From contig NW_025767457.1 in NCBI RefSeq assembly GCF_003918875.1, forward strand, positions 310,001 through 374,000: 64,000 bases of DNA, written 5' to 3'. This DNA is from Haliotis rubra. Lineage: Eukaryota. Under the pieces are notes generated by a model. That model was not told where the DNA came from. It made no database searches and saw only the letters and a list, made by a program, of their open reading frames with translations. Numbering within the stretch: position 1 is the first letter of the stretch; each line of letters opens with the position of its first letter. This document shows, piece after piece, positions 13,562 to 64,000 of this stretch. The position numbers were made by a program, and so were the translations under genes.

Positions 13562-15231
13562 TACGGAAGCGCTGAAGGGACCTGATGAAATAAAATTTAT
13601 CTTGAGAGCACGAGTTCATATATTGAGTGCACAAGTTAATATATTGAGCGGACGAGTTAGTTTTCTTGAGCTCACAAGTTAACATCTTGAGCAGATAAGT
13701 TAGTATGTTGAGCGCACAAGTTAATATCTTGTTTAGCATCTAATGGCATTAATGGAACGCACGTTTGCTTGACTGCTGGCTAAATGTACAAACTTGTATC
13801 CTTTTTGGAAGATTTCAAACGAGGCAAAGTCGGAGTTAACTAGGTGGTTATGATGAGACTATGTAAAGTATGCAATTTTATCATGAACATTGATAATGTT
13901 TATCATGTAAACGTTCATCGTCTTTATGCTTGTCAATACTATTCTTTGTAACTGGTTTTACCACTTTTTGCTTTATAACATAAAGCAGGCTCTGGTATGT
14001 GTAATGTGATAATAAGAGTTAAAACATAAACATGAGTAGGAGTTTATTGCAGGGATGAATAGTGGTTTTACTGACTTCTAATATTGGTACATAGTATTAT
14101 ATGAACAGTAGCTTGAAGCTTGGATAACTTGTTTTGTGCTACGGCTTTATTATGTATATATAGTATTACAAGACCATGAAAAATGTAAACATTGAGGGTA
14201 AAACTTGATGTCAGATGTATTCTAAGTTAAGTCGACCGCTTTCAGGGAACTATTTAGCCTGTAGTCTTGGTTTGCATGTATCAGTAACTGTTTCCTAACG
14301 TGGGTACAATGGCAGTTTAACTCTGTACAATATCATATAAACCAGCCTGGTTTATCTGATCCATTAGTATGTGCACGTATAGCACATATATCGACTTTAT
14401 TTCTTATTTAAATACCATGTTCCCGTTTTACTTCATCCGTTTCAATCCCGTACGTATACGTATGTGTGTTGTAGTGCATCTAACGATAACCATGTCTTTG
14501 TCCAGATCGTCGAAGTTGTCCGCAATAAAGTCTGTAACATCAGCGGGGCGGTGGGGTAGCCTCGTGGTTAGAACGTCCGCCCGTCACGCCGAAGACATGG
14601 GTTCGATTCTCCACATGGGTACAATGTGTGAAGTCCATTTCTGGTGTCTCCCTGATGAAATTGCTGGAATATTGCTAAAGGTGTAAACAGTACTCACTCA
14701 CTCACTGTAACATCAGCAAATCTGGTATCTGGTGCGAAAAGAGGGACATCCACCTCAGAATACGCTTCAAGTGGCGTACTATACTATACCATGATTTTCG
14801 ACAAGAAGATGTGTTATATCTTTGTATTGGAACCAAGACTGAACTAAGCATGAATCAGCTCGCGTTTCCGCTCCCCCGTTGCTTCGACATGAACTGCTTA
14901 TGGAGTAGTGTATCTCAAGATACTAAGTTGAGCGCTCAAGATACTAACTTGTGAGCTCAAGATATTAACTTGTGCACTCAACATACTAACTTGTGCGCTC
15001 AAGATACTAACTTGTGCGCTCAAGATACTAACTTGTGCACTCAACATACTAACTTGTGCGCTCAAGATACTAACTTGTGCGCTCAAGATATTAACTTGTG
15101 CACTCAACATACTAACTTGTGCACTCAACATACTAACTTGTGCGCTCAAGATACTAACTTGTGCACTCAACATACTAACTTGTGCGCTCAAGATAAATTT
15201 TATTTCATCAGGTCCGTTCAGCGCTTCCGTA
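13562..15231. mobile_element. non-autonomous IS3EU-like foldback DNA transposon
   Basis: TIR TACGGAAGCGCTGAAnGGACCTGATGAAATAAAATTTATCTTGAG at both ends, followed by 21-bp subterminal repeats. Exact 6-bp TSD GTATAA at 13556-13561 and 15232-15237. TAY..RTA termini with a 6-bp TSD match the IS3EU definition. Confidence 0.8.
14912..15195. repeat. 21-bp tandem array (ctcaagatactaacttgtgcg), subterminal repeat of the foldback element
   Basis: About 13 copies here; about 6 diverged inverted copies at 13600-13730. Confidence 0.92.
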
Positions 15232-16349
15232 GTATAATGCAAAGAAAGAGACGTGTAAAAACACCTACACCGCAAGTGCTGCTCCAATTTATATTGTTTA
15301 CTTTCCGTCTGACGTAAGCAAGTGCTCGTTCTATCAACAGGCTCAACCGCTCAGACTCCACCATTTACAGGTCAGATGAAACATTCTCTTATGTACTGAC
15401 ACACAGGACTCGAGTGTGCGTGCGTTCCTGCATGTGCGTATAAATATTTATATAAACACTTTACCGCACTCCACCGTTTCAATATATATAGAAGATGTAC
15501 GATTAGGTGAACGATTTCTGCTCTTAGAAAAGGGGTTTTTTGCGTTTGACGTTTAATGCCGCACTCAGCAATATTCCAGCTGTACCACGGCGGTCTGAAA
15601 ATAATCGAATCTGGACCAGACAATCCAATGGTCAACAGCACGAGCATCGATCTATTCAATTGGGATACGATGCCATGCATCAACTAAGCCAGCGAGCCTG
15701 GTCAGCAATTGTCAGCAATTTTATACTTAATATTTTACAATATTATGCTTAAAAAATATGGGAAGAGGAATGGGGTGTCATTGATTTGTACATGATATGC
15801 AAAGGAGGAGGGGGGGGCACCTACAATGTACATACATTTTTAGGGGTGGGGTCATTCACATTGTACATGCTTCTGCATCAAAATCATCTTCAGCCCCCAA
15901 GCCATACATTATAGGGACTAGCCTACCAGTTCTTGCTTTGTCATGTCAGAGAGAGTGCCGCCGAGCGCCAGGGTTGGTAAAACAAATTCTATCTTTAAAC
16001 ATATTTTGGTTTGACACGGTCAGGGATCGAATCACCGACACCAACTCTTTAGCCAATTAACTAATACATGTTACAACAGTCCTTCAAAGATTAGATAATG
16101 CAGTGTTCAAGTTGCTGCATCCCAGTCTAATACGACAATGTAAAAAATTTTATTTCTCAATCCATAGTTCTGTACAATTTCGTGTCCACTAGGCTGTCCC
16201 ACCGCCCAGTGTCACTAGAGAATTGGTCCATACAGCAATAAATATGTGAGTGGAATTTGTAAGTGTAACAGTTAAAACATATTGAGACAGAGATGAAAAA
16301 TTATGTCACATGGATGAGAGTTATCTCCCCTCGGTCGCTCCTGACAAAT

Positions 16350-17741
16350 ATGGCGGCGAAAGAAATAAGCAGACGTCTGCGTCAAAGACAAATTATAAAT
16401 ATCGACGGATCAAAAGTCAATTCTTACAGGTAAATAAGCTTAACATCTAACAACAACCTACGTTTTGTTTTAATTGATGTTTTACTCTGATATAAGCATT
16501 ATTTGGTAGAAACGTTAATAAAGATTCCACGTGGGACGGCACGTTGCAAACTCACCGGTGACGCCTGAATTTGTACCCCGTGAAACTTAGTAAAGTAGTT
16601 TCAACTTATTTAATTTTAGTTGGGGAAAAATACATCTTCAATTTGTTTTTGTATCATTACTACACATGAGATTAAACGTTATTTAAAAAACATTCTTCCT
16701 TTACATCCAGATCCTGATTGACAGATTTATCATTTACAGAGACTTGGCTGATGGGCGTAGACTTGTGGTAAGGCCAGTACCTCCAGTCAAAAAAGAAACA
16801 TGGACACCTGGGTTGTATCCCATTAGAATTATCGACCGACCAAGGACAGGATTTTGCCGGGTTCATTACAGTGGTATCTAATTGAATGACATAACCTAGT
16901 GGTTAGTGGTAAAGTGTAGAATTTCTACAAAACACTAGTACCGATTTATTCAGCGTTTGTGTAATGATAGTTTAACTAAGTTCTGCTGGGACCAGCACTA
17001 AGGTCCGAACTGTAAAGAAAACCGAATTACCCAAGGTCCGAATATGACAGATTCCACTGTATTTTGTTTGAAGATGTTTGGAACTTCTAAAACGTACTTT
17101 ATCCGACAGATATTTGTAAACTGTGTTTCTGAAACTGAATTTCTGCGCCCAAAATGGGCCTTTTTGTGTTTAGTATTTTTAAAATCACAATAAAAAATCA
17201 CAAAATATTTTCTTACACAAAACTTAAGAGATTTACTTTTTCAGGATGGAGCACTTCATATGACGAAGTAATTAAGGTTGAGGACATCGTTGACACTACT
17301 CCACCAGACAGACTACCACTTAGACAACTACAGATTGAAATAAAAGAAGCACTGAATAACTCACACACAGACAGCAAGTTGTTTATTCGAGTACCTATAA
17401 CCAGTGATGATTTCGAGGTAATTAAACAGATTGGTGAGGTTTACCAGACCAGGAGAGACAGAACAGTGTACGTGATCTCCTCCAGACAATGTTTAGAGCC
17501 CATACTGGGAGTCGGGTGGGATTACAGAGTCATCAATGCTCAAGGTGATAACTTTTTTGTCAAAACTGACACAGTCAAGTTTTGGTTTGGTAAGCGGAGG
17601 TCACTGGTTGATTTCACAGTCTTTCCAGACCACGTAGAGGAGTGTTTCCTCGATAGAGGCTATCAACTTTCATTCACCTTTGTCAAAGCCCCAGGAAACG
17701 TGTCCCGACTGAAAGATCTCCTCAATGCCACCAGTTTATAG
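16350..17741 (+). CDS. intact 3-exon gene, 236-aa protein with a chromo-barrel/Tudor-knot motif and an unknown C-terminal domain (transposon accessory protein)
   Basis: Exons 16350-16429, 16740-16873, 17245-17741 (phases 2 and 1; 711 nt) join without stops. The motif LYPIRIIDRPRTGFCRVHYSG|WSTSYDEVI spans the second junction and matches the VHYxGWxxxxDEW chromo-barrel signature. Confidence 0.8.
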
Positions 17742-17762
17742 TCATATAGGCAAGAGTCCAGC

Positions 17763-19836
17763 ATGAAAGTTACAGTTTTACGTCTCATCATGGTAGTCAT
17801 TTCAAAACTGACGTTATTTAACATATTGCAAAGTAACTTGTGGGAAAATCAGTTGACCAAAGAAAACATGGAATCTTTCATTAGCAAGTTAGAGGACGAA
17901 ATTGGTGTGTCTTATATTGTCAGCGAAAGGGAAAAGGACAATATGAAATCAGAATTATTCAGACTCAGAAAACAAGCAGCAACGTGTAAAAGGAAAGGTG
18001 GAAGGCAGTTCAGACATTTTTAGCCAATCTTTCTAAAAAGAATACAAGTGGAATGTAAGTATAGATGGACATCGCAGTGAATTAAAAGTTAATGAAATAA
18101 AACAAAACTTGGAGTGCATCATTGATAATTTAAAACATGAAAACCAGCAGTTAGAAACTAAACTAGTGGAAGCACTAAAACCCGAATGTAAACTGAAAAG
18201 TAAAAGGCTCCCAGACGGTCCAGGACAGAGATCGGAAAAGGAAAATACTAGCTGACTGTACTCACTCTTATGCAAAGAAAGGAAAAATTGAGCAGTGTAA
18301 GGATGCACTACCTTTTGTTGAAGAGGACAACACCAAGGTTTTGTCAATACTAATAGAAAAGGGTGGCAAACACGATGAAATTATCCTTGAAAAAGACAAA
18401 GAAATAAGGAAAGACAGCTTGAATAGACTCTTTGTATGTATTAGATGTGTTTAATGTAAGCAAATAATGCTTATCATGAACTTACTATGCTGTTCAAAAA
18501 TCTTCCCAGATCTCACAAAATTAAAGAGACATATTCGCAGTTAAACAGTAACTTTATCATAAAGGAAACTCCAGACGGATTAGGATATGAACAGTCACTC
18601 GAGAGCGGTTACATGCTGTTGTGCCAAATTTGATCGCAAATGACCCAGATGCTTATATTGACGGGACATGTCTTAAAGTAAAAATCTCGGCAGATGGGAC
18701 ACGGATCGGGAAACACTTACATGATAACGTGGCTTTTACTTTTTATCCTTAACGATAGTAAATGTGGTTCTGCGCTGGGAAATTACCTCTAGCCATTGTA
18801 TGCACTAGGAACGACACTATGAACTTACTCAGGCCCTTTCCAATTTAAGGAAGGAAACAGATGAATTAAATGGAACGTGGATCTCCATAGCTGGTGTACA
18901 ATTGAAACTTACTCTTTTATCTAGGTGGAGATTATAAGTTCTTACTCATTGCTGTAGGAATAAGTTCTATTGCATCTCAACACACATGTATATACTGCAA
19001 GTGTTCAAAACAGGAACGTTATCGTGTCGAAGAAAAATGGTCAATGTCGGATCCAAAACAAAGGGGCGCGAATTGATTATAAGGCATCGAATAGTGACAA
19101 AATGCAGAGAAAACAAAAACTGATTAATTCTTTATCAAACGATCCTTTGTTTCCTAACATACCTCTAAGAAACGTGGTGATTGACCAACTGCATCTCTTT
19201 CTGAGGGTTACAGATAAGCTGTTCAGTCTTCTTTGTGTGTGAATTGAGACTGTTGGACAATGTAAAGACAAACACTTGTTTCAAAGCTGGCCTTGATAGA
19301 AATAAGCTTAAACACATGTCTAGACTGGAGAAACAATTAAAAGAAGCAGGGATAAACTTTGAATTTTTATCAACAAAGATACACGGAAAATAGAGTTTCG
19401 TGATTTGCAAGGTCCTGAGAAATTGAAACTCTCAAAGGTATTTAAAGCCCTCTGGAATTACTTGACGATGAAGAGAGGGCAGGCGTTATACAATCCGTCT
19501 GGGATGGGTTTCACTCCATAAACGATTTAGTGAAATCAAGTGCACCAAATGTGAATGAAGTGTCTTCTGAGATTAATTCATGGATCAAGTTGTATGTAGA
19601 TGCGTATCAGAGATGTGATGTTACCCCGCATATTCACATCCTTCAGCATCATGTTCCTGAACTGATTGGAATTCATGGAAATTTGATTGATTTACACAGC
19701 AGGGGCTAGAAAAACTTAACGATATCGTAACTAAACAGTATTTCAGAGCAAGTAATCATGGAAAACGTCCTTGAAACAAATACTCCAGAAGCAAAACCGA
19801 ATCACCTTGCTGGAGAATTATAAAGGGTCAAAATGA
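17763..19836 (+). pseudogene. frameshifted RAG1/Transib-like DDE transposase
   Basis: Motifs in order across frames: LKVKISADGTRIG (D at 18693), YLGGDYKFLL (D at 18930), CIYC (18987), PLFPNIPLRNVVIDQLHLFLRVTD, DLQGPEKLKL, VTPHIHILQHHVPELIGIHGNL, TQQGLEKLND (E at 19709). These are colinear with RAG1 KESCDG / GYDEK / CxxC / DALH / FHKTLAHVPEIIERDGSIG / EGNESGN. Confidence 0.8.
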
Positions 19837-22800
19837 AAACTGGCACACAGTTAACTTACTAGCTAGTTCGAGTGACGTAGACTGAGTGGTCTCACCTCAC
19901 AGAAGTGTTTAACATGCAGAGGAGGAAGTTTAACTAGTAAGAATTATGTTAAAAGTCTGATGTTTCCTCGCCGCGATATGCTACATGATATAGCACTCTT
20001 TGCCGACAGTCAAGTTTCTTTATTGGCATACATAATATCAAAACTTTTCTCTCTTTAATGGAACAAATGCACAGGAGCCGACTTCTGGATTACACTGTCT
20101 GCAAGAGTACAAATTCCTGTACTTTTAGTGGTTGTATTCGAGGAGGGGCTAAAACTCAGTAAGACACCTCACGCCAGAACTCAGCCTTACAACACTTTAA
20201 CCTCGACTTTAACTATGACCACAGTGAGCCCTGGTGGCGAAGATGTGGGTTTGAGACTCGCATCATTCAACCACGAAAGTAAAAGAATTTGTACTACTGC
20301 AGGTAGTTTGCTTTCTTTGTATTCTTGTCTTTATGGTTAACAGTTTTATTCTTTGGAGGGTAGATATGCTCTGTCAATGTTTTTTGACATCTAATTGAGT
20401 TTGCCTATTTAATGCAATTATATTGTCTTGTTTTAAGACTTATTTTTGTTCAAGCAAGCAATTCCGTGTTGATGTCGGTTGGGTAGGAGAGCTGAATGCA
20501 AAGAAGCCGTGCTTATGCTTGCTTTTGGTTTAGATGATAATTTTCACCACATGAAAAATAAATTTATTATTATCTTTTGTTATGAAATATACCTAAGGAT
20601 GAGGTATGATAGTTTCAGCTTGTGATTGCTGTGTGCAAGGTTGAGTAAACTCATGTTTGGATGAACGTTTAATATCATTCGGATGTTGTTTAGAAACCAA
20701 GATGTAAAGTGATTTGAGATAAAATATCAGTATATCACCGTGCGTCTGTATGTCCTCTCTCCTTTGAGGAAACCGTTATTTGATTTGAGAATGTTATTAT
20801 GTTTGGAGCACATCAAAATCTAGTCTGTATACGAGTGTGCTTTCAAATAATGTATGCGTACATGTTTCCTATTGCTGTGAATGAATAGCAATGTCCCATG
20901 TCGAAAATAACATTGTGAATGATAGCGTTAGGTTTATTTTTTAAATGTTTACAGTTTGACAAAGACAAAAACTTGATTTTTTCCGTTAACATAACGGAAA
21001 CAAAAAGTTAAACCATTTCTGGTTCGCCTTACTGTATTTACATTAAGTTTTGAGAGCTAAAAGGTAGCTGATCTTGCTTTTCGAACTTTTTTCATGTTTG
21101 TAGGGAACATCGATCAGTTTAGTGTTTTCAAATTTAGCTTCCTGGTTAAGGTAAAATACAATGAAGTCATTAGCCTCCTATGTTTCCATAAGAAATGAGT
21201 TTGTTAAAATTTTGTAGGCAATAATTACATGGGTTTTTTTAATTAAATGCTCAACACATAGATAAAACCGCTTCTTGAATGAGTTTAAGGTTCGGTGAAT
21301 AAAGTTAAGTCACTAATGGGATTGGAAATTCCATTTTATGGTTCATGTTATTTAATTTTTAGCTCCACAGGCCTGAAAGGCCCGATAGGCGTGTGGCATG
21401 GCACGCAATCCGGCGTCCGGTCATCCGTCTGCTCTAACAACTGAGTGCATGGGTCATATCTAATTTGCATATTTGACCTTGCTATGATCTTTACGCCTAT
21501 GTATTTGTGTGGGGATTGTTTGAGATATCCTCTTCCTCCAAACAACAAGAGACCCGAAGCTCACACTTTACATGTTCCACGTACTTTATCTTCGTCAGTG
21601 TTGCCCATGAGTAGTAAGCTGATGGTGTTTGTATTAGATATTAAAGTTGATCGCCAGCAGGCTACACAGCATAATTCACTTTCTCGCAGAGCCCGTAGCG
21701 CCGTTTTAATATGGTAAGTTGTTTGGTTTACCAATCTGTCATCAGGAAATGACATATAAATATATGTAGCAGCATGGAGTGCATTTATGTTGGATGAATT
21801 AATACAATAAAAGGAATCGCAAACATATCCTTGTGTTTTATTTTTACCTGTTTGAACCTGGATTTACCCGGAGTTAAACAGTGTTGGTGATGACAGCTAC
21901 ATTAGCATTATGAAAAGCAACGTGTAAAGGCATGAAACCTGTTTATTCAGTTTTAAGAGAAACTTTACATGAATGATTCTTAAGGGTAACAAATTGCATG
22001 AACACCGGTTATGTTATATTTGCAATTTTCCGTAAAAAGACGGTTTAAATATTTATGTTAGCGGTAATTAAAATATCGTATTAGGTAGCTGGAGAATTCA
22101 TCTAACTACACCAGCTCGCAATGGAAACTCTATGAATAAATGACCTGTGGAAAACGAAGTTTTGCGAGCACGAAAGTCTAAATGGAGCTGAACTCAATGC
22201 TACTGAAAAGGTTATTAAAATTTTATTCGTGATGTTTGACGGTTGAAAATATCGATGAACATGGGAAATGATTAGTTGTTTATTGTAAGCTAATAACTGT
22301 AAATGTCACGTTAGGTGCATCGGAGTAACCTGTATCTTGTTAAAATGTTATTTGCCATTAACCATCAGAAGTTACTGCTTTTGGTAACGGACATGGGGAT
22401 AACATGCAGAAGGGGAGATAACTCTGTCGCGAACAACTTTCAGTTGTGAAAGTGTCCCGATATGGTTATCTTGTCGTACACGTGTTGAGTGGCATTGGCA
22501 ATGACCATCCCAATGTGTCTCACTTTAATACACAATTCACGAATCTAACTAGTTGAGCATTTTGATGATACAGACTACATGGCTCATCTGGACATGCGTT
22601 ATCAAAACACTAACCCTGGTCAGCCAGATCCTACTCTCATGACTCTGTCTATGTGAGAGACCTGTTTTGACAGAATCTGGCTAAGTGAGAGGACACCCTT
22701 TGGGCAGAGCCTTTATTCACAACACCACGGATGCGCTTACCTGTGTCGAAGAATTGACATTGAGTTATAAGGTACAGACCATAGCAAAAAACATTACCAC

Positions 22801-28800: not shown

Positions 28801-31800
28801 AGTTTGTGAGTGAGTTTGGTTTTACGCTGCTTTTAGCAATATTCCAGCACCATCACGGCGGGAGACACCAAAATAACCTTCATACAATGTACCCATGTGG
28901 GGAATTGAACCCGGGTCTTCAGCGTGACGAGCAAATGCCTTAACCATTAGGCTACCCCACCGCTCCCTGGTACTGGTTGGGATTTGTGAGATTTTAGATG
29001 GAAGTAAAGAATAGAAATTCAAAATAATGTTGAAAGGAATGAAATAAATTCATGTGGTCAGATATTGACAGATATATAGATTGGTTTCGTGTCTGTTTTG
29101 ACAGGACCGCCTCCGTGGTGTAGTGGTTAGAGCGTCGATCCCTGTATTTCGGAAGATGGATGTGATAACGCATTCGATCCCGAATGCGTCATACCAAAAG
29201 ACGATAAAATATGGTACTTGTTGGTCCCTGCCTGGCGCTCGCCTAATGGGTACAACAAGGACTGGTCGGCTCTCAGTCAGTATACTGTGTCTGAGTGGGT
29301 ATTCATGCTTCACTGCGGCATGGTATCTCAGTGGGCTAGCACTATAAAACCAGCTTAAGTCTGGGCTAGTACAAGCAGGTGCACATACACATACACACGC
29401 ATGCACGTCGTCATATGAGCGAAATATTCTCAAGCACGACGTTAAACCCCATATCACCTCACCTGTTTTGACAGATTCCAATGTAGTATAAATGTAGTAT
29501 GTGACTAATGATGGATAGATCAGGATGAAATGTATTCTGAAACACAATAGTTCTCATATGATAAACTAGGTAAAGAATTTGTGGAAGTCAGGTAATGAAA
29601 TGCAATGCAATAATAGAAAATCCATTTTTCATTCATTTTTTCCCTAGGTTATTTTTAACTGTTCACGTTTAACTGTTACAATTCTTCCATGTTTTGCTGC
29701 TGTTTGACCTGTTTGAGCCTTTAGCTATATTCCAGCACTATCATCCGTGGGCAAAGGGCATAAGAAAAGGGCATCACATATTGACAGAATATTGAATGTA
29801 CTGGTGTTTTCCAGTGTTCCGGGTCCAGTGGCTTGTGTGAACTGCATTGTGCTGTCAGATTTAGTATTATTTTTTCAAAGCGTCATTTAAGGATAGCCTG
29901 ATTAATTATTATGAAAATTCAAAATCTTTATAAATATTATGAAAGCATTATGTGTAATTTCACGATTGATACATCTGTGTGTCTTAACAGACTGATTACA
30001 GAGTGACCCAGTAACTGTTAACTGATGCATGTCTTTCTATATTCACATATATTTCAGATGAAAAAAATGGGCCTACAGCCTGTAGATCTAACATACACAT
30101 CACTTTTCAATGCTTGCGCCAACTCCCCGTGGTCTGAAGATGGTTTGTCAAGGGCAGACAACTTGAGGCAGCTCATGCTCACCAAGGATTATGAACCCAA
30201 CCAGATCACATACCAAGCCATGATCAAGTGTTACGCCCTGCATGGAGACATCCAGACAGCCTTTAGTCTGATGGATGAACTGACCACTAAGATCCGACCC
30301 ACTGCCGAAACTTTCAGCTTCCTGTTGATGGCTTGTATCTCAGACAGGAAGGCGGGATTTAAGTATACCCTGAAGGTGACCTTTTGTATTTTCATTGCTT
30401 ATTACAATTATTCAGAGAAAAACAGTAGTTCAACGTATACTATATTTGGGATTACCCTTTCTCAGTAAAGTATAGATGCTAGTACTTTCATGGGTTGTGT
30501 TCCATCTGAGATTTGAACCTACGCTTTCAGCACACAAAGTCAGCGATCTAACCCACTCAGTCATCGCTTCTTCCACAGAAATTGAAGTCTGACAATAGGT
30601 GTAGATTATTGAAAATTTTAATATAAATTGTATATTTATATACTTATCCTATCTCACGATTTGCACTTCTCTCTCTTGCTTCGACGCTGAGTGGAACGAA
30701 TGAGAACTTTTCCTGTAGGCCTCTCTTGTCCATACGCCCGTGTTCCCCAGGCTGCTCTCCTTATAGGACAGGTCCCTAGTCCCAGGCTAAGCGTGCAGCA
30801 TGTTCCCCTGTCTACCCACGTGACTACCTCAGAGTGATCATTCTCTTCTTGGAGCCAATGACAGTTATACGTAACCATCATAATCTGAGTAGAGGGGAGG
30901 CTGGGTGGGCATCCATCTCGTGAGATAGGATAAGTATATAAATATACAATTTATATTCAAATTTTAAAATTTTAAAACTTATCCTATCTCACGATTTGCA
31001 CTTATCCCACGGTTGGATGGCGGGTCACAGATTACCCTAAGTCAAAAGGCACTGACAGTATATACTGTATAGGCTAATGACAACCGTAGATAGCAATGAA
31101 CAAGGGAGGCCGGATCTGACTAGCATAGTACTTCTACTAGTGATGGGTTCTCCTGAACCCCTTGGCTTACTAGGCATCATCGCTCCCAAGGAGTGGGTGC
31201 TCCTGAGCAATGTGGTGTTCGGCCCCAGGATCCAACTAGCATAGTACCTATACTAGTGATGGGTTCTCCTGAACCCCTTGACTTACTTGGCATCATCGCT
31301 CCCAAGGAGTGGGTGCTCCTGAGCAATGTGGTGTTCGGCCCCAGGATCCAACTAGCATAGTATCTATACTAGTGATGGGTTCTCCTGAACCCCTTGACCT
31401 ACTTGGCATCATCGCTCCCAAGGAGTGGGTGCTCCTGAGCAATGTGGTGTTCGGCCGCAGGATCCGACTAGCATAGTACCTATACTAGTGATGTAGTGAT
31501 GGGTTCTCCTGAACCCCTTGGCTTACTAGGCATCATCGCTCCCAAGGAGTGGGTGCTCCTGAGCAATGTGGTGTTCGGCCCCAGGATCCGACTAGCATAG
31601 TACCTATACTAGTGATGGGTTCTCCTGAACCCCTTGGCATACTAGGCATCATCGCTCCCATGGAGTGGGTGCTCCTGAGCAATGTGGTGTTCAGCAGCAA
31701 CCCTCGCATACGCAAGAAAATGCAACTAGGCAAGTCACCTTGCTTAGCCACGACTTATCAGAGTACCCCCGTAATTACGACTAGTAATCGGGCCTGCACC

Positions 31801-56408: not shown

Positions 56409-58409
56409 GAAGCGGTGTAAGAATCTGTACCGAAACGTTGCATCATAATATAATAAAGATGTTGTCATCCATAAAGTATATTGCCTTTATTATTAGTTTT
56501 AAAGTTGATGATATAGATATATTAACCTTCGAAAATGTTGAATAGTCTAGTTTTGATCCGATGCACGAGCGTTTTCAGCTGTTTATAAAACGTGTCATTT
56601 ATAGGTACTGCAGTATGTTCAATTTGCTTTTAAATGTGACATGTAGCGAGGCTTGAGTTATGTTGTTAAGGCAAATGTGTGATGCTGAGGACGTTGTCTC
56701 GCGATACCTGTGTAACATGAGAAACAGGTGAAACTTAAACATTGGATGTGTCCAAGTCGTCAGTGGTGCCGTAATTCGTGGAACAGTTGCGTCCCTTTGG
56801 ACACTCAAGAAACCGACGTGGGTTCGAACCGCGTTTCACCCCTGTTATGTTCGTAAGTTTGTCAGCATTATGTCCTTACAAAATGGTTTCACAAAAAGTG
56901 GTAAACGTCTGAGAACAACATTACTTCGGGCTTTCCTCCCACAATCAGCAGACACGCTGTTATATGGCTAAAATACTGTTCAAATGTGCGGTAAAACCCA
57001 CTCACTCATGTGAACATTGAATACACAATGCCATTAAAAAATGGTCAAATGTAACATATGTTATGGATCACACTTTCTTAGCAAAGTACAGAATCTAGTG
57101 CTTTTGTTGGGTTGAGTCCCATCCGGGATTCGAACCCACACCCTCAGAGTCCGGCACCTGATCGCTATCAACCAAAGTCAACCAAAGGTACTAGAATCTG
57201 TACTTTACTGAGAAAGTGTAATCTCAAATATAACACATGTCATGTGAACATGTTAAATACCATTGACAATAGATTTACAAAAGCCAACTTGAGGTATCAT
57301 AGACCTGACCATCGTCAGAAAAATGGCTCATTTCCTCACAGTTTCCAATATCCAGTACTGTTGTCTCATGTCACCCCTTGAGATTTCAAATCCGTAAGGG
57401 CAAACGTAACGCATATCAACAGTGTTTCAAAACTCTCTGTAACTTCACAGTTTGACATTTTATGATAGGCCATACACGACCTACAACACCCTTAGTTTCA
57501 CGTTTAGCACTATTCCTAATGGGATTGGGCACAGACATGTTCACTTTCTAATTTCATGCAACAGTTCAGCATGCGTCCACGCCATGTTGTAGTTCCACCC
57601 ACTGAAGCGACGGGATAATTGCAGTTGTATAGACATATAGAAGCATACCTCCAAGGGCCTTCATGGATACCGCGCCTGCTGACAATTTCCCCGAGATGCA
57701 ATGAAATCCCCTTTAAGCACGGCGCTAACATCAGACCAAAGAGTACTCTTCTGGAAGACAGTTTTGATTAGTCACAACGTACTACTATCACAGAATCATA
57801 TAACGTTTTGGTGGAAAGTCGCATCAGCCAAAGGTTCCCCTGAGACACCACTTACCAGTAAAAGTGTTTCGTTTCACCCATTGCTTAAAACCTATCACGA
57901 AAGTGAATTTTTGGTGGACAGTTTTGTGACCGTCTAAAATTAGGAGAATGCCCTTTTAATCACTTTACTTGACGTTGCCCCGCAACGTTCGGGCCAATGT
58001 CATTGCCATTTTGGATTAAAAACCTTTCATCTGGTCTTTGGAGAGCGGTAAGGCAACCTATCACGATTTTCTATCACTAATATTCTTAATCGAATTGCGG
58101 TCTTATCACAGGGCGCCTTGAAGCGTGACATATAGAAGCTTTCTGGCGCTCTCCCTTCATCGCTGGGACGGCCTCTGACGTCTCAAGTTGTCTCGTCCCC
58201 CAGAACACTTTCATCATACTGTAGTTACTCTGGTAAAAATACAGCCATTGGCTTTTGGGCTTAAACATTACTTCCCCACATATACAAAGCCTCATTATGT
58301 TGTATTTCTCATTGACTCGAGGCGGAGACGGTCTATATGTTTGTATTTAGAATTGTGTGTATATTAGAGACGATGGGTTTATGAAAGACGCTGTGTATAT
58401 ATGATGGAA

Positions 58410-60525
58410 GGTGTGTGTATTAGAGATGCTGTGTGTATTGGATGTGTGAATATGAGGGAAGATGTGTGTATTAGAGATGGTATGTGTATTGGATGTGTGG
58501 ATATGAGGAAGATGTACGTTTTAGAGATGGTATGTGTATTGGATGTGTGAAAATGAGGGAAGATGTGCGTATTAGAGATGGTATGTGTATTGGATGTGTG
58601 AATATGAGGGAAGATGTGCGTCTAAGAGATGGTATGTGTATTGGATGTGTGAATATGAGGGAAGGTGTGCGTATTAGAGATGGTATGTGTATTGGATGTG
58701 TGAATATGAGGGAAGATGTGCGTATTAGAGATGGTATGTGTATTGGATGTGTGAATATGAGGTAAGATGTGCGTATTAGAGATGGTATGTGTATTGGATG
58801 TGTGAATATGAGGGAAGATGTGCGTATTAGAGATGGTATGTGTATTGGATGTGTGAATATGAGGGAAGGTGTGCGTATTAGAGATGGTATGTGTATTGGA
58901 TGTGTGAATATGAGGTAAGATGTGCGTATTAGAGATGGTATGTGTATTGATGTGTGATGAATATGAGTGTATTAAGATGTGTGTATTGGATGTGTGATTA
59001 GAGGGAATGGTATGTGGTATTGTATTGGATGTGTGAATATGATGGAATGTGTGTGTATTAGAGATGGTATGTGTATTGGATGTGTGAATATGAGGGAAGG
59101 TGTGTGTATTAGAGATGGTATGTGTATTGGATGTGTGAATATGAGGGAAGGTATGTGTATTAGAGATGGTATGTGTATTGGATGTGTGAATATGATGGAA
59201 GATGTTTGTGTATTAGAGATGATATGTGTATTGGATGTGTGATTATGAGGGAATGTGTGTGTATTAGAGATGGTGTGTGTATTGGATGTGTGAATATGAG
59301 GGAAGGTGTGTGTATTAGAGATGGTATGTGTATTGGATGTGTGAATATGAGGGAAGGTGTGTGTATTAGAGATGGTGTGTGTATTGGATGTGTGAATATG
59401 AGGGAAGATGTGCGTATTAGAGATGGTATGTGTATTGGATGTGTGAATATGAGGGAAGATGTGTGTGTATTAGAGATGGTATGTGTGTTGTGTGTGAATA
59501 TGAGGGAAGGTGTGTGTATTAGAGATGGTATGTGTATTGGATGTGTGAATATGAGGGAAGATGTGCGTATTAGAGATGGTATGTGTATTGGATGTGTGAA
59601 TATGAGGGAATGTGTGTGTATTAGAGATGGTATGTGTTTTGGATGTGTGAATATGAGGGAAGGTGTGCGTATTAGAGATGGTATGTGTATTGGATGTGTG
59701 AATATGAGGGAAGGTATGTATATTAGAGAGTGGTATGTGTGGATGTGTGAATATGAGGGAGATTAGAGATGGTGTATGTGTGATTATGTGTGTGATTATG
59801 GATGTGTGATTATGAGGGAATGTGAATATGTGTGTATTAGAGATGGTGTGTGTATTGGATGTGTGAATATGAGGGAAGGTGTGTGTATTAGAGATGGTAT
59901 GTGTATTGGATGTGTGAATATGAGGGAATGTGTGTGTATTAGAGATGGTGTGTGTATTGGATGTGTGAATATGAGGGAATGTGTGTGTATTAGAGATGGT
60001 GTGTGTATTGGATGTGTGAATATGAGGGAAGGTGTGTGTATTAGAGATGGTGTGTGTATTGGATGTGTGAATATGAGGGAAGGTGTGTGTATTAGAGATG
60101 GTGTGTGTATTGGATGTGTGAATATGAGGGAATGGTGTGTGTATTAGAGATGGTGTGTGTATTGGATGTGTGAATATGAGGGAAGGTGTGTGTATTAGAG
60201 ATGTGTGTATGTGTATTGGATGTGTGAATATGAGGGAAGGTGTGTGTATTAGAGATGGTGTGTGTATTGGATGTGTGAATATGAGGGAAGACTGTGTGTA
60301 TTAGAGATGGTGTTAGTAATATTGTGTGAACATCACGGTGTGGGACACCAGAAATGGGCTTCACACATTGTACCCATGTAGGGATTCGAAGGCGGGGCTT
60401 CGGCGTGACGAGCCAACGCTTTAACCATTAGGCTACCCCACCGCCCGTGAATATGAGGGAAGGTATGCGTATTAGAGATGGTATGTGGTATGCGTATTAG
60501 AGATGGTATGTGTATTGGATGCGTG
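58410..60525. repeat. 51-bp minisatellite array, interrupted near its end by a SINE (60315-60446)
   Basis: Unit gtattagagatggtatgtgtattggatgtgtgaatatgagggaagRtgtgY; produces the spurious 17-aa-repeat ORFs. Confidence 0.96.
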
Positions 60526-63659: not shown

Positions 63660-64000
63660 TAGGACCATTATGTGATAACAGTGCAGATAAATGGGCAGAT
63701 ATCCGTGAAGTTATAGAGGACCATTAGGTGCTTACACTGCAGATATCTGTGAAGTTATAAAGGACCATTAGGTGCCTATACTGCAGATATCCGTGAAGTT
63801 ATAGAGGACCATTAGGTGCCTATACTGCAGATATCCGTGAAGTTATAGAGGACCATTAGGTGCCTATACTGCAGATATCCGTGAAGTTATAGAGGACCAT
63901 TAGGTGCCTATACTGCAGATATCCGTGAAGTTATAGAGGACCATATCCGTGAAGTTATAGAGGAGGACCATTAGGTGCCTATACTGCAGATATCCGTGAA
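63660..64000. repeat. 44-bp tandem repeat running off the right edge
   Basis: Unit gaggaccattaggtgcctatactgcagatatccgtgaagttata, period 44 (63804, 63848, ...). Confidence 0.95.

Follow-up and report, generated by a model that had tools for sequence, protein, structure and literature searches.

Transib elements carry a single gene, and RAG-like (RAGL) elements carry RAG1L and RAG2L genes in convergent orientation; CAC termini and duplications of 5 bp at the target site (TSDs) are described for these transposons (PMC7204232, PMC4411706, PMC9435367). Chapaev elements have CAC...GTG ends and a TSD of 3-4 bp (PMC4079192), and their transposase has an N-terminal Chapa zinc-finger domain (PMC4079192, PMC4411706). 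A central question in the origin of V(D)J recombination is by what route a RAG1-like transposase acquired its dependence on a second subunit that reads chromatin. The DNA analysed here, referred to as the window, is a stretch of 64,000 nucleotides from the abalone Haliotis rubra (contig NW_025767457.1, positions 310,001 to 374,000). It is animal sequence with a GC content of 37-46%. At positions 16278-22474 it very probably contains an old copy, by now probably dead, of a cut-and-paste DNA transposon that has two genes and belongs to the RAG1/Transib superfamily.

A first-pass annotation had placed a RAG1-like transposase gene beside a chromo-barrel gene at 16350-19836, and both genes do lie there, inside an element that is larger. 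It had also described two same-strand genes separated by 21 bp, and this spacing was recovered exactly, with the stop codon of the upstream gene (gene 1) ending at 17741 and the ATG of the downstream gene (gene 2) at 17763. The best explanation of the whole, moderately probable, is a RAG1/Transib-type element whose accessory chromo-barrel protein works with the transposase.

Gene 2 (17763-19836, on the forward strand, as are all the stranded features of the element given below) was delimited by tblastn and a hidden Markov model (HMM) of the family, and it contains about 10 frame changes. The six motifs reported earlier are all present and colinear, distributed over three frames, starting at 18684 (ISADG), 18924 (GGDYK), 18987 (CIYC), 19183 (DQLH), 19635 (HILQHHVPE) and 19700 (QGLEKLN). 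The closest full-length relative, the 714-aa protein P0003, is matched by tblastn from residue 1 to residue 694 in ascending order (E 1e-64), and the family HMM aligns in 10 ascending pieces between 18197 and 19833.

The putative catalytic residues can be placed within these motifs. The first aspartate (ISADG, 18693-18695) corresponds to D312, invariant in alignment A1, and the second (GGDYK, 18930-18932) to the invariant D391, which aligns with the G-x-x-D-E-K of RAG1. The predicted zinc site comprises a CxxC (CIYC, 18987-18998; invariant C410 and C413, aligned with RAG1 YICTLC) and an HxxxxH (HILQHH, 19635-19652; invariant H627 and H632, aligned with RAG1 HKTLAH). The catalytic glutamate (QGLEKLN, 19709-19711) corresponds to the invariant E652 and aligns with RAG1 EGNESGN. 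The resulting spacing, about 80 aa between the aspartates and about 259 aa from aspartate to glutamate, is RAG1-like. Past a stop, a degenerate C-terminal CCHC knuckle (C-x2-C-x4-L-x4-Y, 19906-19947) can be recognized from the family consensus CxxCxxxxHxxxxC, and to judge from this match gene 2 once extended through it.

The kinship of gene 2 with RAG1 is visible only with family profiles and a structural model. Neither the single window pieces of gene 2 searched against Pfam and the PDB, nor the longer pieces from a second H. rubra locus (L001) in single-sequence searches, gave any match, and none of the Pfam models covers the family. Starting from a 167-aa piece of the H. rubra transposase, HMMER run exhaustively gathered 1,234 relatives; many have lengths of 700-760 aa, and the named sequences among them are from Argopecten irradians and Holothuria leucospilota. 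In alignments A1 and A5, residues D312, D391, C410, C413, D478, H481, H627, H632 and E652 are invariant, and a C-terminal CCHC knuckle is present.

The profile built from this family matches RAG1 of zebrafish and mouse (6e-7 to 8e-8) and BbRAG1L of amphioxus (5e-6), and the alignment to RAG1 spans the second catalytic aspartate, the CxxC, DxLH and HxxxxH motifs and the catalytic glutamate. HzTransib of Helicoverpa zea is not matched by this profile. In place of the broken window gene, the relative P0003 (54% identical) was modelled with AlphaFold2, with a predicted local distance difference test score (pLDDT) of 88.5. By Foldseek, the P0003 model resembles mouse RAG1 (E 9e-17; template modelling (TM) score 0.67 over about 570 columns), BbRAG1L (1.6e-12) and HzTransib (5e-12). 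The N-terminal 250 aa of the transposase hold no conserved Cys/His and are predicted to be helical or coiled-coil. The triad, the zinc site and the similarity thus agree at the protein level, and the earlier proposal of RAG1/Transib kinship holds by both profile and modelled fold: gene 2 is, on this evidence, a transposase of the RAG1/Transib superfamily.

Gene 1 is composed of three exons. Exon 1 (16350-16429; MAAKE..., with a basic N-terminus) runs from an ATG to a splice donor, and this N-terminus is conserved in the homologs P0172 and P0175. Exon 2 (16740-16873) is bounded by splice sites and encodes the first chromo-barrel strands, ending in ...VHYSG (HMM E 1e-14). Exon 3 (17245-17741; WSTSYDE...) encodes the rest of the barrel, a C-terminal domain of about 130 aa and the stop codon (HMM E 3e-86; 95% identity to H. 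rubra LOC124278357). The splice sites are all canonical GT-AG (CAG/GTAAAT, ...TTTACAG/A, AGTG/GTATCT and TTTTTCAG/G), and the spliced product is an unbroken open reading frame (ORF) of 236 aa in which VHYSG/WSTSYDE bridges intron 2. An intron at this HYxG/W position is common to abalone and scallop.

Profile searches gathered 37 homologs of gene 1, of about 210-250 aa. A profile of 34 of them matches, in the PDB, the MBT repeats of L3MBTL1/3 (1e-9) and the chromo barrels of MRG701 (7e-7), Eaf3 (5e-6), MRG15 (3e-5) and MSL3 (3e-4), and also those of ARID4A and MOF (within the group at 7e-7 to 3e-4). The scallop homolog P0172, whose identity to the window protein is 41-46% according to the part compared, was modelled with AlphaFold2 at a pLDDT of 83, with values above 90 in the folded parts. 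Residues 48-91 of this model form a small beta-barrel that aligns with RBBP1 (Z 5.4), the Polycomb chromodomain (Z 5.1) and MRG15 (Z 5.0). These Z values are modest; the root-mean-square deviation to the RBBP1 and MRG15 chromo domains is 1.7-1.9 Å, with MRG15 at 1.7 Å and 26% identity.

The methyl-lysine pocket of MRG15 is formed by Tyr26, Tyr46 and Trp49 (PMC1747190). The motif-matched positions in the gene 1 family are aromatic in 28/30, 30/31 and 31/32 homologs, respectively, and a fourth cage position matched in the same way is aromatic in 31/32; the window copy has Y, Y, W and Y at the four sites. The earlier identification of a chromo-barrel is therefore upheld by profile and by modelled fold, and the product of gene 1 is, as predicted from both, a Royal-family chromo-barrel protein with a second conserved domain.

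A homolog of gene 1 stands beside the transposase in 8/8 untruncated transposase loci examined, in agreement with the linkage anticipated by the first-pass annotation, and the pairing is found in independent, diverged copies from Haliotis, two Argopecten families, Holothuria and two further animals. In Argopecten irradians (L002) the homolog, annotated at 238 aa, ends about 100 bp upstream of an intact 717-aa transposase on the same strand. In a second, diverged Argopecten family (L005) it lies directly upstream of a decayed transposase, again on the same strand. The same arrangement occurs with a transposase in a further animal (L003) and in Holothuria (L007), where the homolog stops just before the transposase ATG. 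In three loci of another animal (L008, L009 and L011, the ERZ lineage) the homolog lies downstream of the transposase on the opposite strand, so that the two genes are convergent. The only transposase locus without a partner is the truncated L010. The pairwise divergences of the two proteins are correlated (r 0.65), and the mollusc trio is closest in both; this lends weak support, as the pairs are non-independent.

Gene 1 could instead be a host gene standing by chance beside a single-gene, Transib-like relic. Canonical Transib is indeed a single-gene element (PMC7204232), and gene 1 carries introns, as host genes do. The conserved linkage all but refutes this explanation: the two genes are neighbours in no fewer than six diverged lineages, from molluscs, an echinoderm and other animals, their adjacency falls inside the boundaries of identical mobile copies, and in scallop both are on one mRNA.

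The pair lies within one mobile element, and comparison of copies defines its extent. Gene 1 has a single word-search match, LOC124278357, whose locus L001 holds the second H. rubra copy. The window element, about 6.2 kb long (16278-22474), is 98-99% identical to L001:9125-16359, and the flanks are unrelated on both sides. At its copy boundaries are the left terminal inverted repeat (TIR) CATATTGAGACA (16278-16289) and the right TIR ...TGTCCCGATATG (22463-22474); the left repeat agrees with the reverse complement of the right end at 10/12 positions. A repeat search added a perfect 15-nt subterminal inverted repeat, with arms at 16317-16331 and 22411-22425. The 3′ part of the element (19948-22462, without assigned strand) is non-coding, with no ORF above 100 aa on either strand and no Rfam family. 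The earlier remark that no RAG2-like ORF lies nearby is confirmed for the element, since no ORF above 100 aa occurs in 19836-22474, in either the window or L001. Further copies of the element were not found within the window.

In the ERZ lineage, L008 and L009 share 100% identity across 5,055 bp; inside are the transposase gene and the chromo-barrel gene alone, and a perfect 13-bp inverted repeat, CATATGAAACTTT, beginning CATATG, is at their ends. Because these identical copies have unrelated flanks, the element looks recently active. As a separate observation, the sequence beside the truncated copy of this lineage (L010:10297-14283) contains genes that match zf-RING, an rve+Chromo integrase and, faintly, a Pox_A32 ATPase, and looks like a Maverick/Polinton-type or other large mobile element.

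The two H. rubra copies also inform on the decay seen in the window. Over 17461-22474, the window copy and L001 differ by 38 substitutions and 43 indels, the latter mostly of 1 bp in short runs. The L001 transposase has about three breaks, leaving stop-free pieces of 349, 98, 73 and 167 aa. As indels are about as frequent as substitutions and mostly single-base, and L001 has only these few breaks, assembly error may lie behind part of the apparent decay, and many of the window frameshifts may be consensus errors of either assembly or of both. Exon 3 of gene 1 is split at L001:10318-11377 by an insertion of 1,060 bp whose ends are short inverted sequences (CATTCGT.ACC... / ...GGT.ACGAAT); the NCBI model counts this insertion as an intron, which yields the shortened 160-aa LOC124278357.

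Expression data are available for the scallop pair. A contig assembled from a sequencing run (L004) is colinear with L002 minus two introns. As this spliced contig holds both ORFs, separated by 103 nt, expression of the pair probably proceeds from a single dicistronic mRNA, and the 21-bp gap in the window agrees with such a design. In Pecten maximus, LOC117344989 (L006:9986-20348) is a homolog of gene 1 (223 aa, with an intron of about 9 kb), and no transposase remnant was found within 10 kb downstream of it; to judge from this setting, it may be an accessory gene that was domesticated or orphaned.

These data bear on an explanation in which the accessory protein acts outside the transpososome, as a self-regulator or anti-silencing factor that, for instance, masks or competes for repressive marks. 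It is conserved alongside the transposase and co-transcribed with it, and the solo Pecten homolog makes transposase-independent action possible. However, the solo copy could be no more than a deletion derivative or a domesticated gene, and we regard this explanation as highly unlikely.

The mechanism proposed for the pair assigns the accessory protein to the transposition machinery itself. The transposase would cut and paste the element by RAG1/Transib chemistry, with the accessory protein as its subunit or cofactor. The chromo barrel, through its aromatic cage, would read a methylated histone lysine and thereby anchor or license the transpososome where chromatin is in a particular state, and the C-terminal domain would make contact with either the transposase or the ends of the transposon. 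Such a role would parallel that of the RAG2 PHD finger for RAG1. This chromatin-reader mechanism, which draws on the fold, the aromatic positions and the linkage, is put forward tentatively and is judged a little short of evenly balanced.

In an alternative to this mechanism, the accessory protein would be a cofactor for DNA-end binding or nuclear import, like the Myb-like ORF2 of PIF/Harbinger, with a barrel that is structural or binds nucleic acid and is no reader of histone marks. The C-terminal domain (residues 96-224 of the model, confidently predicted) is the better conserved of the two and has most of the near-invariant columns, and the N-terminus of the protein is basic. Moreover, some chromo-barrel and Tudor-knot domains bind RNA or DNA, as the Pfam name 'RNA binding activity-knot of a chromodomain' reflects. 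Against this stand the strong conservation of the aromatic pocket over at least 30 homologs, as expected of a methyl-lysine cage, and a C-terminal domain that resembles no DNA-binding fold. This alternative is considered unlikely, and the chromatin-reader mechanism is retained as the working proposal.

Database comparisons of the C-terminal domain gave little guidance. Foldseek matches to Bet v1/PYR1 (TM below 0.2) were rejected, as was the best match of a VIA-wide search (Z 4.2). In AlphaFold DB clusters the domain matches uncharacterized animal and fungal proteins and, weakly, C2orf42 homologs. For exon 3, an ESM Atlas feature search found no meaningful neighbour, and the Atlas shape search with the gene 1 model returned only Tudor-knot matches, to the N-terminal domain. 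Separately, the two-domain accessory protein is weakly similar in AlphaFold DB to the C-terminal half of C2orf42 homologs, with E 8e-5 for a beetle cluster representative and about 0.02 for human and mouse. Further proteins that it resembles, all uncharacterized, are from amphioxus, oyster, scallop, corals and Rhizophagus fungi.

Several observations weigh against the pairing of a RAG1/Transib-type transposase with a chromatin-reading partner as proposed here, and the first group concerns the non-protein marks of the superfamily. To our knowledge, the CAC tip is invariant in Transib, RAGL and the recombination signal sequences. Copy comparison places the termini at CATAT in Haliotis and at CATATG in the ERZ lineage, and the CAC tip is absent. 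The tip CATAT of Haliotis does recur in this unrelated ERZ-lineage subfamily, and a scan for CATAT-tipped TIRs in L002, L003, L005 and L007 gave one borderline pair (16/20), in L005 only, which is not relied on here. The alignment of copies suggested earlier defined terminal and subterminal inverted repeats and yielded no consistent 5-bp TSD among the five complete insertions (the window, L001, L008, L009 and L011), searched for duplications of 3 to 8 bp under several end definitions. Only L009 has a 5-bp repeat (ATCTC), one base out of register, in a comparison that included no empty sites. CATATG as a duplicated palindromic target (an ATAT TSD) was also tried on the insertions as a possible alternative.

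The second group concerns the proteins. Pfam searches with single gene 1 members give weak and mixed matches (MSL3_chromo-like, Tudor-knot, Chromo and MBT), all under the gathering scores. The C-terminal domain found no convincing PDB relative by Foldseek, or by the VIA-wide or Atlas shape searches, and the role given to it is a guess. The broken transposase of the window makes function of this copy unlikely, and gene 1 there may be equally dead despite its open frame. The claim that gene 1 is an intact spliced ORF stands as regards the three GT-AG exons and the unbroken frame, and 'intact' is unproven. At 17280-17282 a valine (YDEV) replaces the near-invariant tryptophan of DEW, which is W in 31/33 homologs, and a valine at this position is restricted to the window and L001 copies; gene 1 is perhaps non-functional because of this change. 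Its exons show no indel relative to L001, but the substitutions in them are mostly non-synonymous, so that the lack of indels is no proof of selection.

In comparison with RAGL/ProtoRAG, the element shares the RAG1-type transposase with its D/D/E triad, CxxC...HxxxxH zinc site, fold and C-terminal Cys/His tail, together with a two-gene layout in which a catalytic subunit is accompanied by a small partner that has, or may have, a reader of histone marks. Like RAG2L, this partner is convergent in one lineage. However, the partner here is a chromo-barrel protein of about 235 aa, whereas RAG2L is a Kelch propeller that may or may not have a PHD finger. The partner of the mollusc and sea cucumber elements lies upstream on the same strand, with a shared mRNA. 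The termini are CAT rather than CAC, a consistent 5-bp TSD is not seen, and the N-terminal Chapa or RING region is missing.

The element shares with HzTransib the transposase core fold and the lack of the RAG1 N-terminal zinc domains. It differs from canonical Transib, which has one gene (PMC7204232), in having a second, conserved gene in every untruncated copy examined, and in its TIR tip. From Chapaev/CMC it is set apart, on published descriptions, by its CAT termini and by the lack of conserved N-terminal Cys/His.

Other mobile elements provide parallels for the design of the pair. Royal-family readers could steer the integration of chromoviruses and lentiviruses to a chromatin state. As in the chromoviruses (Ty3/gypsy, with an integrase-chromodomain) and in LEDGF-tethered lentiviral integration, a recombinase is here combined with a Royal-family reader, although this reader is not fused to a retroelement integrase but is a protein in its own right, encoded by a DNA transposon, and the targeting is only putative. 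PIF/Harbinger elements share the obligate two-gene design of a transposase and a small accessory protein, but their transposase belongs to an unrelated superfamily and their accessory protein has a Myb/SANT DNA-binding domain. The arrangement had been proposed as a distinct one, and a full-text literature search, outside which Repbase and Dfam fall, found no paper pairing Transib- or RAG1-like elements with a chromo or Tudor partner.

In itself, the copy in the window is a relic; what makes it interesting is the family that it reveals, a widespread lineage of its own where a RAG1-type transposase appears stably paired with a different reader-like protein. On a broader and rather doubtful proposal, histone-mark-reading partners would have been recruited more than once by RAG1-type transposases. 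The chromo-barrel protein would be an obligate chromatin-licensing subunit, a functional analog of RAG2 or possibly an older alternative to it, in a widespread and still active element, and the solo descendants (the Pecten gene and perhaps C2orf42-like proteins) would be domesticated relics. A separate lineage with such a stable pairing would make the 'transposase plus chromatin licence' a recurrent solution and not a one-off, and would offer a natural comparison for the contribution of RAG2. The scallop element, with both ORFs intact and transcribed, and the identical copies L008/L009 could be active RAG1-like transposons that have a new targeting module, and may be of use as a tool.

Other features of the window are repeats. 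Directly upstream of the element, a 21-bp unit is repeated in tandem 13 times (14914-15195); the repetitive ORFs to which it gives rise on the two strands are spurious. Within a GC-richer block at 30-38 kb lies a tandem array of a 116-bp unit in about 5 copies (31112-31699). A G/T-rich 51-bp satellite, with about 36 copies in two blocks (58355-60313), is the source of a GC-skew spike of 0.75, and a 44-bp array of about 6 copies (63695-63944) is located near the window end.

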